This document shows positions 21,997 through 59,270 of a stretch of 64,000 nt of DNA, in pieces. Numbering within the stretch: the stretch's first letter is position 1; each line of letters starts with the position of its first letter. The position numbers and the translations under genes were made by a program. The notes under the pieces were generated by a model. The model did no database searches. It was not told the DNA's origin and was given only the letters and a program-made list of their open reading frames with translations. The stretch lies in the NCBI RefSeq assembly GCF_006345805.1, contig NC_043001.1, forward strand, positions 121,272,001 through 121,336,000, given 5' to 3'. The DNA comes from Octopus sinensis (Eukaryota).

Positions 21997-24745
21997 ATAC
22001 TCAAATTCGGTGTGTGACACACTAATTGTACATATAAGGCAACTTGGTGTAGTTATATGTGCTACATATCACCCTCCAGATGCCCCAAGCCATGTAGGCA
22101 AGTTTGAAGACTGCCTTATAAAAATAGAAGTTCTAGTCACATTAGAACAACACATAAGTGTACTTCTCATGGGAGACTTCAATCTGCCCAATGTCAGATG
22201 GCCCGAGGGCCTTTCTCTCCCAGGAATGACACGATGCGAACGAGAACAGGCGAGGTCCCTCCTGAACCTCATCAACACTCTGTACATGGAGCAAATAATA
22301 CTCCAACCAACCATGGCAGGTAACATACTGGATCTCTGCTTCACAAATAATATGGATCTCATCCATAATGTGAAAGTGACACCGACACTACTCTCGGATC
22401 ACAACATGGTAGAGCTGACCATGTACGGGCCAAAGGAAAGCATGGGCATGCAGTCTACAAGAAACTCTCAGAATCTTTCCAGCTTGAACTTCCATAAGGC
22501 AAACTGGAAATGAATTGAGAAAGAGATCCTCAAACAAAACTGGCCTGAATGTCTCTCCATCGACATGAAACTCCAACAATTCATGTCTGTAATGCAAGCC
22601 ATATGCTACAAATGTGTCCCAGAGAGAAAGGCCACTGTACACAAGAACAAAATCCCCAGAGAGAGGAAAATTCTAATGAGACGGCGTACAAAAGTTTCAA
22701 ATCGTCTAAACAAACAAATTGAAAGCAGTGAAAAGTCCCGCCTGAAAATAAAACAATTGGAAAAAGAAAGAGCAGACAAAGAAGCCTGGGCTATAGACAA
22801 CATAAAATCTAACCCCAGAGCTTTCTACAGGTATGCCAAAGAAACAGCTACGGTGCACTGTAGGATAGGGCCACTCCTTGAAAAGGATGGCACACTCATA
22901 GGAAATCCAATGAGGATAAGTGAAATACTAAATGAGCAATTCAAGAGTATTTTCACTCCACCCCTAGGGCATTTTCAAGTCAGTAATCCAACTGACTTCT
23001 TTACCACTGCAGATATAAAATCAGAGGCAGCGATGATTGATTACATCAATATAAAGGAAGACGATGCCATAAAGGCTATAGATGAAATGAAAACAAACTC
23101 AGCTACTGGCCCCGATGGATTCCCGGCAATCCTTCTAAAAGTATGTAAGAGAGTCCTAGCAAGACCACTGCAGTTCCTCGTTCAGAGCTTCCTTGCAACT
23201 GGCAAACTTCCAAGAAAACTGAAGGAAGGTAAAATATGCCCTATTCATAAAGGAGGTAGCAGAGCGGAGGCCAAGAACTACAGACTTATCTCTCTGACCT
23301 CACACATCAGTAAGGTCATGGAACGAATAGTCAGAAGGAAACTAATCACCTTCCTTGAAGAAAATGACTTGCTGCCTGACACCCAACATGATTTCCGACC
23401 AGGAAGAAGCTGCCTAACTCAGCTCCTACAACACTATGACTGGGTGCTGAAACGACTGCTCAACCACCCAAATGTGGAAGTCATATATCTTGACTTTGCA
23501 AAGGCCTTTGATAAAGTCGATCATGGAATGATATGTTACAAACTGCGTGATCTTGGCATAGTTGGAAAATTGGGAGAACGGCTTCATGACTTTCTCAAGG
23601 ATAGAAGCCAGGTGGTAGTAGCCAATGGGGCCACTTCCATTAACACGCAAATAGTGAGCGGTGTTCCGCAAGGCACTGTTTTGAAACCACTACTGTTCAT
23701 AATGGTCCTCTCAGGCATGCCCTCAGCCACGCAGAGAGCCACGACCACAAGTTATGCAGGTGATACAAAAGTTTCACATGCAATACAGAACCCTGAAGAC
23801 ACTATACACCTGCAATGTGAGTTGAAAAAAATATACAAGTGGGCTGAAAAGAATAGCATGCAGTTCAATGCTGAAAAGTTTCAAGCTTTATGCTATCAGC
23901 ATGCAAAACTAAATGCAATACCCAATAAATACGCTGGACCTGGAGGGATTGCAATCCCAGAGGCACAATCAGTGCGAGACCTGGGTATTTACATGAGTGA
24001 TGATGCAACCTTTCATGTGCATGTTGCTAAATTGGCAATGAAATGTAGGCGGCTGACCGGATGGATTCTTAGAACCTTTAGAACAAGAGACCAAGAAACC
24101 ATGATGGTCCTCTGGAGGATACTTGTCCTAAGCCACTTTGACTATTGCTCTCAGCTATGGTCACCATCCAGTGTCAAGTTAATCACAGAACTGGAGGCGA
24201 TCCAACGAAACTACACGAAGAAGATAGCCTCTGTGCAGCATATAAGCTACTGGGAAAGACTCAAGAGATTAAGACTCTATTCCTTAGAGCGTAGGCGAGA
24301 AAGATATGCCATAATATACATCTGGAAGATCCTAGAAGGACTTGTCCCAAACTTTGGCATCGAGAGTTACACAAATACTAGAACTGGGCGCCACTGCGTA
24401 GTGCCAAGGACTCCAAATTTAGCATCAAGATGTAGGACAAGATAATGTGATAGCCTGGGCTTCAGAGGCCCATATTTCTTCAATATCCTCCCGAAGAACC
24501 TGAGAGACCTGCATGGGGTGGATGCAGATGTCTTTAAAATAAAACTGGATCTCTTCCTGTCAGGTGTCCCAGATGAACCAACTTCACGGCAGGAGGTGCA
24601 GATGAGGGCAGCTGCATCGAACTCTCTCATGCACCAAATGGCAATTGCTAAAAAGCATTCGTGAAGTAAAATCATGTAGCAACACCAAATGGCGGTGCCC
24701 CAGCATGGCCACAGCTCGTGAGCTGAAACTAGATAAAATAAAAAA
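21997..24745 (+). mobile_element. LINE copy A, CR1-group (Proto2-like), 5'-truncated within the APE domain; ORF2 interrupted by 2 in-frame stops
   Basis: APE GDFNLP..LDLCFTN..SDHN; RT PGRSCLTQLL, IYLDFAKAFDKVDH, SGVPQG, RLYSLERRRERY, VPDEP. Stops at 22511 and 24443, natural end at 24662-24664. 3' UTR ends ctagataaaa. Both sides abut (AT)n. Confidence 0.93.
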
Positions 24746-24804
24746 ATAAATAAAAATAATTATATATATATATATATATATATATATATATATATATATA
24801 TTGA

Positions 24805-25560
24805 TAGACGTAGGAGTGGCTGTGTGATAAGTAGCTTGACAACGAACCGCAGTGTTCTGAGTTCAGGCCCACTACGTGGCGGCTTGGGCAAATGTCTTCT
24901 ATTAGAGCCTAGGGCCGACCACAGTCTTGTAGACGGAAACTGAAAGAAGCCCGTCGTATATATATATGTACATACACATACACACACACACACACACACA
25001 CACACACACACACACACAACACACACACACATATATATATATATATATATATATATATATATATACATATGTATGTATATATATTACATATATATATATA
25101 CATATATACATATATATATATATATATATAGATATATATATATATATATATATATATATATATATATATATATATATACATATATGTATATAGGTATATA
25201 TATATAGGTATATATATAAACTGAAAGAAGCCCGTCGTATATATATATGTATATATACATACATACATACATACATATATATATATATATATATATATAT
25301 ATATATATATCAATATATATATTATTATATATATATATATATATATATATATATACGTTTGTATGTCTGTTTATCCCTCCAGCATCGCTTGACAACCGGT
25401 GCTAGTGTGGCCACGACCGGTTAGGCAAAAGAGACAAATAAATTAAGTACTAGGCCTACAAAGAATAAGTTCTGGGGTCGATTTGCTCGAATAAAGGCGA
25501 TGCTCCACCATGGTCGCAGTCAAATAACTGAAAAAAGTAAAATAGAGTAAAACAGTAAAT
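24805..25560 (+). mobile_element. SINE (head 24805-24960, tail 25355-25560) with an expanded internal microsatellite
   Basis: Head and tail match 58887-59270. The snippet aactgaaagaagcccgtcg is duplicated inside the microsatellite at 25218. Confidence 0.8.
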
Positions 25561-57277: not shown

Positions 57278-58886
57278 TTAATGGATAAATTCCAGTTACT
57301 CTAAATAGTTGCTTGACTTGCTAAAAATAGCAGTGAAACCTTCCTCAGATCACACTTTTCTACTCTAATGGAAGAATGTCAGATCGTCTAAATAAAAGCT
57401 TGACTTGCTAGAAATAGCCATCAAATGTTCCTCAGATCACTCGTTTCTTTTCTAATGGAACAATGTCAGATCCTCTAAATAGTTCCTTGACTTGCTAGAA
57501 ATATCAATAAAATCTTCCTCAGATCAAACTTTTCTATTCTAATGGACAAATGTCAGATGATCTTAATAGTTGCTTGACTTGCTAGAAAGAGGAGACAAAT
57601 CTTCCTCAGATCACACTTTTCTAGTTAATAGACCAATGTCAGATGCTCTAAAGGACCAATCTCAGATCTTCTAAATAGTTGCTTGACTTGGTAGAAATAA
57701 CAGTCAAATCTCCCTCAAATGTCAGATGATCTTAATAGTTGCTTGACTTGCTAGAAAGAGGAGACAAATCTTCCTCAGATCACACTTTTCTATTTAATAA
57801 ACCAATGTCAGATACTCTAAAGAACCAACGTCAGATCTTCTAAATAGTTGCTTGACTTGGTAGAAATAACAGTCAAATCTCCCTCAGATGACACTTTTCT
57901 CTTCTAATGGACCAATGTCAGATGCTCTTAATAGTTCTTGACTTGCTAGAAAGAGCAGACAAATCTTCCTGAGATTACACTTTTCCATTCTAATAGACCA
58001 ATGTTAGATCCTCTAAATAGTTGCTTAACTTGATAGAAATAGTAGCCTATACTTCCTCAGATCACATTTTTCTATTCTAATTGACCAATGTCACATCCTC
58101 TAAATACTTGCTTGACTTGCTAGAAATAACTGTCAAATCTTAATCAGATCACACTTTTCTATTCTAATGGAACATGTCAAATCCTCTAAATAGTTTCTTG
58201 ACTTGCTAGAAATAGCAGTCAAATCTTAATCAGATCACACTTTTCTATTCTCATGGACCAATGTCAGAACCTCTAAAGTTTCTTGACTTGCTAAAAATAA
58301 CAGTCAAATCTTCCTCAGCTCACGCTAATTGATTTACTTGCTAGAAGTAGCAGTGAAATCTTCCTCAGCTCACACTTTACTATTCTATTGGAACAATGTC
58401 AGATCCTAATAATAGATGCTTGACTTGCTAGAAATAGCAGTCACATCTCCATCAGATCATACTTTTCTATACTAATGGACCAATGTTATTATCCTCTAAA
58501 TAAGTTGCTTGACTTGCTAAAAATAACAGTCAAATCTTCCTCAGCTCACGCTTTTCTATTCTAATGGACTAATGTCAGATCCTCAAAATAGTTTCTTGAC
58601 TTGCTAGAAATAGCAGTCAAATCTTCCTCAGATCACACTTTTCTATCCTAAGGGACCAATGTTAGATCCTCTAAATAGATGCTTGACGTTCTAGAAATAG
58701 CAGTCAAATCTCCTTCAGATCACACTCTTCTATTCTAATGGAACAATGTCCGATCAATTAAATCATTGCTTAACTGCTAGAAATAGCAATCAAATCTAAT
58801 GGATACAAATTTGTTAACATATTCACCTACAACTGTTTCATTTCACAAGCAAAATTAAAATTACAAAACATTTATATAAATATATA

Positions 58887-59270
58887 GGCGCAGGAGTGGC
58901 TGTGTGGTAAGTAGCTTGCTAACCAACCACATGGTTCCGGGTTCAGTCCCACTGCGTGTCATCTTGGGCAAGTGTCTTCTGCTATAGCCCTGGGCCGACC
59001 AATGCCTTGTGAGTGGATTTGGTAGACGGAAACTGAAAGAAGCCTGTCGTATATATGTATATATATGTATGTGTGTCTGTGTTTGTCCCCCTAGCATTGC
59101 TTGACAACCGATGCTGGTGTGTTTACGTCCCCGTAACTTTGCGGTTCGGCAAAAGAGACCGATAGAATAAGTACTGGGCTTACAAAGAATAAGTCCCGGG
59201 GTCGAGTTGCTCGACTAAAGGCGGTGCTCCAGCATGGCCGCCGTCAAATGACTGAAACAAGTAAAAGAGT
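58887..59270 (+). mobile_element. Complete tRNA-derived SINE (reference copy in this window)
   Basis: A-box-like tggctgtgtggtaag and B-box-like gggttcagtccc, an internal short microsatellite, tail ggcggtgctccagcatggccg..tcaaatgactgaaacaagtaaaagag. At least 12 further partial copies occur in the window. Confidence 0.88.

Follow-up and report, generated by a model that had tools for sequence, protein, structure and literature searches.

A two-hairpin 3' tail common to a SINE family and an octopod LINE lineage in the genome of Octopus sinensis

The DNA analysed here, referred to as the window, is a stretch of 64,000 nucleotides of Octopus sinensis contig NC_043001.1 (assembly GCF_006345805.1, positions 121,272,001 to 121,336,000 of the forward strand), and coordinates are counted from its first letter. 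It carries copies of long interspersed nuclear elements (LINEs) and of a family of SINEs (short interspersed nuclear elements) whose 3' ends have the common pattern GGYGGTGC-NYCA-GCATGGCC-N-CAG..CTG-AAAC, predicted to fold into two abutting hairpins. This tail was present at the 3' ends of three LINE copies (A, B and D) and at at least eight SINE 3' ends.

The coding part of LINE A (22001..24664, + strand) was recognized by tblastn (87.5% identity to P0001, the protein of an intact relative), by the Pfam domains Exo_endo_phos_2 and RVT_1, and by frame reading. The copy is 5'-truncated, aligning to residues 131-1026 of P0001, and has an apurinic/apyrimidinic endonuclease (APE) and a reverse transcriptase (RT) in one frame, with one internal stop and a terminal TGA at 24662-24664. 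Hairpin 1 of its tail (24687..24738, +; cmsearch 76.8 bits, E 5e-25; fold -18 kcal/mol, z -2.8) starts 25 nt past the stop codon, with (ATAAA)-like repeats and finally (TA)n downstream of the tail; the 3' untranslated region (UTR), of ~70 nt, is essentially all shared tail motif. LINE B (30582..33632, +; tblastn and list of open reading frames, ORFs) is full length (residues 1-1023 of P0001) and decayed by frameshifts and stops; its tail (33677..33727, +; 69.2 bits) has the loop AUCA and a C-G closing pair. LINE D (47606..49138, +; self-BLAST and tblastn) is 5'-truncated (residues 513-1023), with the tail at 49184..49234 (+; 67.5 bits; fold -19.5 kcal/mol, z -2.6). Including tails, the three copies extend over 22001-24740, 30582-33730 and 47606-49235. 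DNA identity was 94% between B and D and ~75% between A and either of them. Truncation at the 5' end, as in A and D, is usual for LINE insertions.

The SINE, the commonest short repeat of the window, is represented by a full copy at 58877..59271 (+), in the order tRNA-like head with A- and B-box-like motifs, central domain, internal (TA/TG)n tract, 3' body and tail (59216-59267; cmsearch 61.1 bits; ending GTAAAAGAG). The consensus head contains TGGCTGTGTGG (A-box-like) and GGTTCAGTCCC (B-box-like); no tRNA match for the head was obtained by ARAGORN, nor by Rfam with one SINE even at E <= 1. At least a dozen SINE copies or fragments were detected in the window by BLAST with the copy 58860-59290 and by self-comparison, mutually ~75-85% identical, i.e. 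old. They include a copy with a terminal tail at 27981-28032 (27958..28456, -; BLAST; cmsearch 44.8 bits), a SINE 3' half whose tail, 61007-61059, is cut inside hairpin 2 (60839..61059, +; cmsearch 35.3 bits), and a tail-only fragment with extreme 5' truncation (49460..49528, -; cmsearch 67.5 bits), which holds the best-preserved SINE tail of the window. Three copies, 45454-45579 (+), 60411-60717 (-) and 44021-44130 (-), stop within a few bases of each other after hairpin 1, reading ..GGCGGTGCTCCAGCA and continuing as (TA)n or as an A-rich run; the first of them (BLAST, sequence) is a 3' body ending ..GGCGGTGCTCCAG before (TA)n. These copies may be a subfamily devoid of hairpin 2 or the outcome of repeated truncation.

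Two further arrangements involve the SINE. A palindrome of ~96 bp (59269-59364), 84% self-complementary, lies directly 3' of the full copy, and two ~82%-identical units at 29535-29892 and 39520-39953 each consist of a pair of SINE 5' halves in an inverted, head-to-head arrangement.

The tail motif was far more frequent in the window than expected. The degenerate pattern GGYRGTGCNNNNGCATGGCCRC, allowing up to three mismatches, gave nine matches in 64 kb against 0.05 expected, a number reached by none of 100 shuffles, and a covariance model made from the tails recovered three LINE and eight SINE tails with cmsearch at E <= 0.03. The tail strings quoted in the initial annotation were all recovered in place: GGCGGTGCCCCAGCATGGCCACAGCTCGTGAGCTGAAACTAG in LINE A at 24691, GGC(A/G)GTGCATCAGCATGGCCGCAGCTCTGAGCTGA(A/T)ACTAG in LINE B at 33681 and LINE D at 49188, GGCGGTGCTCCAGCATGGCCGCCGTCAAATGACTGAAACAAG in the SINE at 59220, and GGTGGTGCTCCAGCATGGCCACAGTCAAATGACTGAAACAAG in the minus-strand SINE tail 49484-49524. 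The SINE arm CAGTC given there holds as a consensus, taken from other copies, but the copy at 59220 itself has CCGTC. When the SINE was compared with full-length LINEs by BLAST, matches were confined to SINE query positions 358-427, that is, to the tail, with 71-84% identity between SINE and LINE tails over ~56 nt. Pattern, covariance model and tail-confined similarity agree with the earlier proposal that the SINE and this LINE group have a homologous 3' tail. A LINE origin of the SINE body as well was ruled out, no BLAST similarity to the LINEs being found outside the tail. After the tail the elements end in short tandem repeats, not in poly(A): (GTAAAAGA)n in the SINE and (ATAAA)n, (AATTA)n, (ATACAAG)n or (AACATTA)n in the LINEs. 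No Rfam family, and thus no known RNA family for the tail, was matched in the whole window at gathering thresholds.

A protein search followed by DNA look-ups supplied the 3' ends of related copies located outside the window. The tail was present in L001 (Logan run, intact 1033-aa ORF, 88-89% protein identity to copy A), L086 (ENA metagenome, 72-73%), L002 and L089 (ENA metagenomes, 63-64%), and in two copies of L003 and in L087 (Argonauta hians genome, 57-62%), so that the tail-bearing LINE copies cover two genera and 57-89% protein identity. It starts ~6-25 nt after the stop codon in LINE A, L001, L002, L089, L086 and both copies of L003; in L087 the position of the stop codon is ambiguous. 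A SINE body upstream of the tail was looked for by BLAST in the outside copies and none was seen. Because the tail occupies the same post-stop position in these copies, with no SINE body before it, it is a genuine, lineage-specific part of the LINE. That the A lineage was functional recently is indicated by its intact ORF of 1033 aa in a public run.

The initial annotation had itself raised the case that the LINE 3' UTRs are SINE tails inserted behind the LINEs, and the fixed post-stop position in the outside copies speaks otherwise. Chance insertion of SINE tails or fragments could draw on the very dense SINE fragments of the window, one of which (49460-49528) is a tail alone; the same junction is seen again, however, in three copies of the window and, outside it, in copies that stem from several sources and two genera, the LINE-type loops and stems are consistently unlike those of the SINE, and in 43 kb of Argonauta sequence the LINEs have the tail while no SINE with a two-hairpin tail was found. 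We regard this explanation as scarcely credible.

With the covariance model the motif was undetectable in relatives at or below 50% identity (L088, L004, L005 and ~80 JGI metagenome loci), which places its sequence-level limit at ~57% protein identity. Repeating the protein search with the L086 lineage as query gave no new close lineages, and among viral contigs the covariance model returned nothing beyond weak chance matches to the tail, at ~14 bits. The 3' end of L005, a relative of ~42% protein identity missed by the covariance model, reads at 5055-5124 GAGGCGGCUA-CCCA-UAGCCACCUU, then GGGAUUUUCCC, AAAAC and (TTACAA)n; architecture and loop are those of the octopod tail, whereas the inner stem is another one, again complementary (fold z -3.6). 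In the window, LINE E (41435..43470, +; tblastn, 31-41% identity to P0001) is likewise a distant relative. In its 3' UTR the arms GGUGGUGC..CAUGGCC, as in octopod hairpin 1, flank a larger loop, and the terminus is (TTCTAAGTTA)2; the fold is not significant (z -0.9). The resemblance of the hairpin-1 frame of L005 and LINE E to the octopod tail is by eye and by minimum free energy (MFE) fold, and is without statistical support.

Tails were folded singly by MFE, with energy z-scores calculated per tail. The same architecture was obtained in every LINE lineage and in the SINE, with energies from -16 to -24 kcal/mol and z from -1.7 to -3.7. From its base inwards, hairpin 1 consists of 3-4 outer pairs, (N)GGC/GCC(N'), then a G.G mismatch of 1x1 type, then GUGC/GCAU as inner stem, with G.U as closing pair, and it is capped by the tetraloop NYCA. 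Hairpin 2 abuts it, with a stem of 4-6 bp that starts with CAG and ends with CUG, and is followed by GAAAC and a few short tandem units differing by lineage. The loops were CCCA, AUCA, ACCA and UCCA, with bases 3-4 (CA) invariant and bases 1-2 variable, as anticipated in the claim that the stem of hairpin 1 is kept while its loop varies. That claim had taken hairpin 1 to be TGC/GCA; the hairpin exists, but its stem is longer and includes the G.G mismatch. The pairing of GG(C/T)GG with CC(G/A)C implied in the same annotation did not hold, being unpaired in five of ten lineages; both variable sites, (C/T) and (G/A), are CpG dinucleotides, where decay would be expected to yield just such C>T and G>A changes.

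Covariation was examined in an alignment of ten lineages and 13 pairs. Pairing was possible in 97.7% of the alignment cells, against 20-50% when partners were slid, the former being inflated relative to the slid controls by a fold derived from the same sequences that were counted. Changes on both sides were found in four of the 13 pairs, a number reached by nine of 500 shuffles, and the covariation score was 0.207 against a shuffled mean of 0.092, with none of 500 shuffles reaching 0.207; the sample is small, ten lineage-level sequences, and was assessed by shuffles. The closing pair of hairpin 1 is U-A, C-G or G-C in the LINEs and an unpaired A..G in the SINE; the third outer pair is C-G, replaced by U-A in Argonauta lineage 2 and by U.G in L089. 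In hairpin 2 the fourth pair is C-G in all LINEs and U-A in the SINE. The fifth reads U-A in A, L001, B and D and C.C in L002 and L089; L086, the SINE and the two Argonauta lineages have C-G. Mapped on a neighbour-joining protein tree, these amount to approximately six independent compensated events and one lineage-level loss. The exchange of CT/AG for TC/GA with pairing preserved, proposed earlier for hairpin 2, was confirmed and is better described as two separate compensated pairs: from an apparently ancestral CAGCC/GGCUG, the SINE altered one pair and the LINE clade of the window the other. With one MFE fold throughout and four of 13 pairs compensated, the description of the tail as two hairpins supported by compensated base changes is upheld.

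Single changes in the decayed copies B and D apart, no variation was seen in the G.G mismatch and inner stem of hairpin 1, in its loop bases CA, in the CAG/CUG with which hairpin 2 begins and ends, or in GAAAC; because these positions never vary otherwise, sequence-specific contacts at them are suggested.

A composite family in the window provided an internal control. It joins the SINE 3' half, with its tail now internal, to an extension of ~370 bp that ends ..GTTTTAGATAGTATATAT, then (TATG)n or (TA)n, a 3' end unlike the LINE tail. In the copy at 25238-26010 (or, more narrowly, 25340..26010; +; alignment; cmsearch 38.2 bits for the internal tail 25492-25543) both hairpins are broken (TGC..CCA; CAGTC..AACTG) and the fold reaches only -7.8 kcal/mol; the copy at 40558-41339 (or 40653..41339; +; alignment) has a degraded internal tail at 40830-40879 (cmsearch 21.5 bits). 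Further copies were aligned at 33927-34591 and 45583-46186 (-); the latter overlaps the SINE copy at 45970..46451 (-; BLAST, alignment, cmsearch), whose tail at 45988-46039 is followed by the extension at 45583-45987. In three of the four composite copies, whose tail is internal, the two hairpins are disrupted by changes common to these copies, which, in a small sample of four copies, fits a tail structure that matters only when terminal. A tandem repeat at 26009-27817, with a unit of ~510 bp in ~3.5 copies 99% identical, begins exactly at the end of the first composite element.

Covariation shows that the structure is selected, not what reads it, and it could serve in 3'-end formation, RNA stability or small-RNA targeting in place of recognition by the RT. 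Such another role appears unlikely to us: the structure stands at the extreme 3' end beside short tandem repeats, is common to an autonomous and a non-autonomous retroposon, and degrades once internal, as is expected of an RT start signal (compare UnaL2; PMC1636434).

The Argonauta sequences also bear on the build of the SINE. Seven copies of an Argonauta SINE were found in the 43 kb (L003, L087). A central segment of 118 bp, ~80% identical, is the sole part that it has in common with the octopus SINE; its head and 3' part are different, and it ends ...GCAGGAGAGTCATTTACATTT, without the two-hairpin tail. The central segment is a candidate CORE domain and may resemble the MIR core. Because the Argonauta SINE shares the centre and ends differently, the octopus SINE tail is, as judged from these comparisons, a swappable module acquired separately from the conserved centre, and since the LINE has the tail in both genera, the LINE is its likely donor. 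The reverse direction, capture by a LINE lineage of the 3' end of a SINE, would give the same similarity, which alone does not indicate direction. It is nevertheless held very improbable, as the tail occurs in all sampled octopod LINE lineages including those of Argonauta, where the related SINE has another tail, and as the related hairpin-1 frame in LINE E and L005 suggests a structure old within the LINE group.

Among the sampled LINEs, the tail of L086 was the closest to that of the SINE (84% identity, against 74-77% for the window LINE copies), with termini of GAAACAAGTAAAAGAGTATAT in the SINE and GAAACAGAGTAAAAGAGTATAT in L086. Window LINEs A, B and D have a derived U-A pair in hairpin 2 that is absent from the SINE, and different loops. 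The earlier statement that the partner LINE had been identified therefore stands at the level of the LINE group, but the window copies A, B and D are not the closest members. The donor was probably an L086-like lineage keeping the ancestral CAGCC/GGCUG stem, and not that of the A, B or D copies. An isolated tail fragment at 18975..19025 (+; cmsearch 15.2 bits, E 0.03), 5'-truncated inside loop 1, combines a remnant of a LINE-like CCCA-type loop with an arm CAGTC of SINE type and, at its terminus, the repeats (TAAAAGAA)2; it may be the trace of a LINE lineage nearer to the SINE donor, or a mutated SINE tail.

With shared sequence, terminal position, LINE ownership, predicted fold and covariation observed, we consider it probable that the last ~58 nt of the SINE are a module copied from the 3' UTR of an octopod-specific LINE, and that the LINE protein copied the SINE through the two-hairpin tail. 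If it works like the stringent-type LINEs UnaL2 of eel and ZfL2 of zebrafish, the LINE ORF protein would bind the two-hairpin tail of its own transcript and prime reverse transcription at the target, starting at the terminal repeats; a SINE transcribed by RNA polymerase III would present the same structure and be copied in trans. The invariant G.G mismatch and the variable loop bases 1-2 would fit, on this analogy, the hinge of UnaL2 and the loop reading of ZfL2.

Several points weigh against this proposal, besides the inflation of the pairing percentage and the small covariation sample given above. Binding by the protein and trans-mobilisation of the SINE are inferred by analogy; the SINE is devoid of the covarying closing pair of hairpin 1 (A..G); three SINE copies end directly after hairpin 1; and the SINE copies, at ~75-85% identity, are old and therefore give no support for a present-day partnership. 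Moreover, the SINE tail, with loop UCCA and stem CAGUC/GACUG, was matched by none of the nine sampled LINE tails, and in zebrafish the loop is read specifically, ZfL2 proteins discriminating cognate loops (PMC4176376), so that the sampled lineages may not move the SINE.

These last points also favour a partnership that is historical only, in which the tail came from an L086-like or now-unsampled LINE and the window lineages A and B/D cannot recognize the SINE. The derived U-A pair of the window LINEs and the 84% identity of L086 are in accordance with it, and the fragment 18975-19025 may point to an intermediate that has not been sampled. The SINE and all LINE lineages, on the other hand, agree fully in the inner stem with its G.G mismatch, in loop bases 3-4, in CAG/CUG and in GAAAC, which makes cross-recognition across the LINE group plausible. 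A purely historical partnership is thus a possibility of some weight, short of being the expected one. Returning to the partnership through the tail, a more specific version of it is advanced tentatively: the tail would be an undescribed recognition RNA of one octopod LINE lineage, with lineage-specific loop and stem variants as address labels determining which RNA is moved by which LINE protein, and the octopus-specific SINE burst would have been driven by one unsampled or extinct lineage of UCCA / CAGUC-GACUG type. If that were true, hairpin 1 would be sufficient by itself, judging from the SINE copies that end behind it.

The octopod LINE has a single ORF of 984-1041 aa (APE and RT) in contigs of 3.2-3.7 kb. 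Its protein matched only RVT_1 and Exo_endo_phos_2 in Pfam, and its best PDB sequence match, L1 ORF2p (1e-23), is uninformative on clade; no clade name was obtained from Pfam, PDB, source names or cluster names. In the relatives L004 and L005 (~42% identity) a further ORF, of ~520 aa, lies upstream and tandem units of 10 nt form the end, while the octopod lineage is without ORF1. A 3' hairpin and terminal repeats, features of the CR1/L2 type, are present, and a C-terminal motif may resemble chicken CR1. A single ORF of ~1035 aa in 3.2-3.7 kb is compatible with the RTE superfamily including Proto2, the likeness named in the initial annotation, and not diagnostic of it. Proto2 of fish and sea snakes has a single APE+RT ORF in an element of ~3.3 kb (PMC7846101), and in a mollusc survey tree-based Proto2 was found only in bivalves, plus an annelid, with few copies or singletons in a few other species (PMC10294476).

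Other repeats were noted in the window as well. A 7.3-kb tandem array at 2026-9289 consists of 346 copies of a 21-bp unit (CAACGTGGTAACGATTCTGGC; 93% matches). Blocks of an 87-bp satellite (~80% matches) lie at 49948-52253, 52664-55608 and 57299-58797, within 49948-58797, preceded by a 121-bp repeat at 49535-49949; the satellite unit contains GCAGTCAAATC, of which 10 bases (GCAGTCAAAT) are common with the second hairpin of the SINE, probably by coincidence. An interspersed repeat family at 20504-20874, 28853-29525 and 44180-45334, 77-88% identical and partly GT-rich, is unrelated to the SINE or the LINEs.

The octopus SINEs OR1, OR2 and OK were reportedly described by Ohshima and Okada in 1994. 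They are listed as tRNA-derived CORE-SINEs without partner (PMC4824008, PMC4758252, PMC5804259), and OR2 and OK are RepeatMasker names of class SINE/tRNA-Core (supplement of PMC9115989), a class without LINE suffix and therefore without a partner recorded in the RepeatMasker library. The window SINE may resemble them in its tRNA-like head and in a central domain shared with the Argonauta SINE; no occurrence of the SINE-tail strings, as a link to OR2 or OK, was found in the searched part of a supplementary O. vulgaris transcriptome. In the papers searched, a set outside which fall the 1994 and 2005 Okada-laboratory papers and Repbase, no LINE partner of octopus SINEs was stated, so that an earlier notice elsewhere is possible. 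tRNA-Core-type SINEs are described as the main, octopus-specific repeat component of Octopus, with ~40% of transposable-element content (PMC8967140), and a debated link has been drawn between octopus SINEs and both rearrangement of the genome and expansion of neural genes (PMC12988792); no driver of the SINE expansion was named in PMC9115989, PMC8967140 or PMC12988792. A candidate LINE lineage and a defined RNA element of ~55 nt make that driver testable: the LINE lineage and the SINE bursts can be compared in age, an intact ORF is at hand for assays, and the covarying pairs, the mismatch and the loop variants constitute a mutant series. The LINE RTE-2_OV, reported to be expressed in octopus brain, has an ORF of 1109 aa and 5' and 3' UTRs of ~600 nt each (PMC9115989). 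It is like the window LINE in its APE and RT domains, whereas the latter has an ORF of ~1033 aa and a 3' UTR of ~70 nt filled by the tail, so that the two are different elements.

The sharing of 3' tails between SINEs and LINEs is textbook knowledge. The eel pair of the L2-clade LINE UnaL2 and UnaSINE1 was reportedly established by Kajikawa and Okada in 2002. The octopus pair is like it in that SINE and LINE share a tail some tens of nucleotides long, in the stem-loop with short tandem repeats behind it, and in a non-Watson-Crick hinge, the invariant 1x1 G.G mismatch in octopus. In UnaL2 the hinge is a bulged C and a U-U mismatch, required for retrotransposition and resolved by nuclear magnetic resonance (PMC1636434). 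The two pairs have no sequence similarity, and differ in two abutting hairpins against one, in their terminal repeats, in the single octopus LINE ORF of ~1035 aa, and in that the octopus case is known from sequence alone. In zebrafish ZfL2, the ORF2 region lying between endonuclease and RT was shown to recognize the stem in a general way and the loop with specificity (PMC4176376). ZfL2-1 and ZfL2-2 are related LINE lineages with the same stem and different loops, as are the octopus lineages with CCCA, AUCA, ACCA and UCCA; stem and loop binding is shown in zebrafish, and is an analogy in octopus.

Among molluscs, BivaCORE-SINE1 and BivaV-SINE2 have been paired with CR1-14_CGi, and other SINE/LINE tail pairs are on record (PMC4824008, PMC4758252), with no octopus SINE partner stated in these two papers. 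As in the octopus case, these SINEs have conserved central domains, their 3' tail matches a LINE of the same genome, and the partner was deduced from the tail and a predicted stem-loop; hosts, tails and LINE families of the bivalve and gastropod pairs are different. The octopus pair is a further case of stringent-type SINE/LINE tail sharing, and a non-vertebrate addition to the small set of stringent LINE tails with comparative structural evidence.

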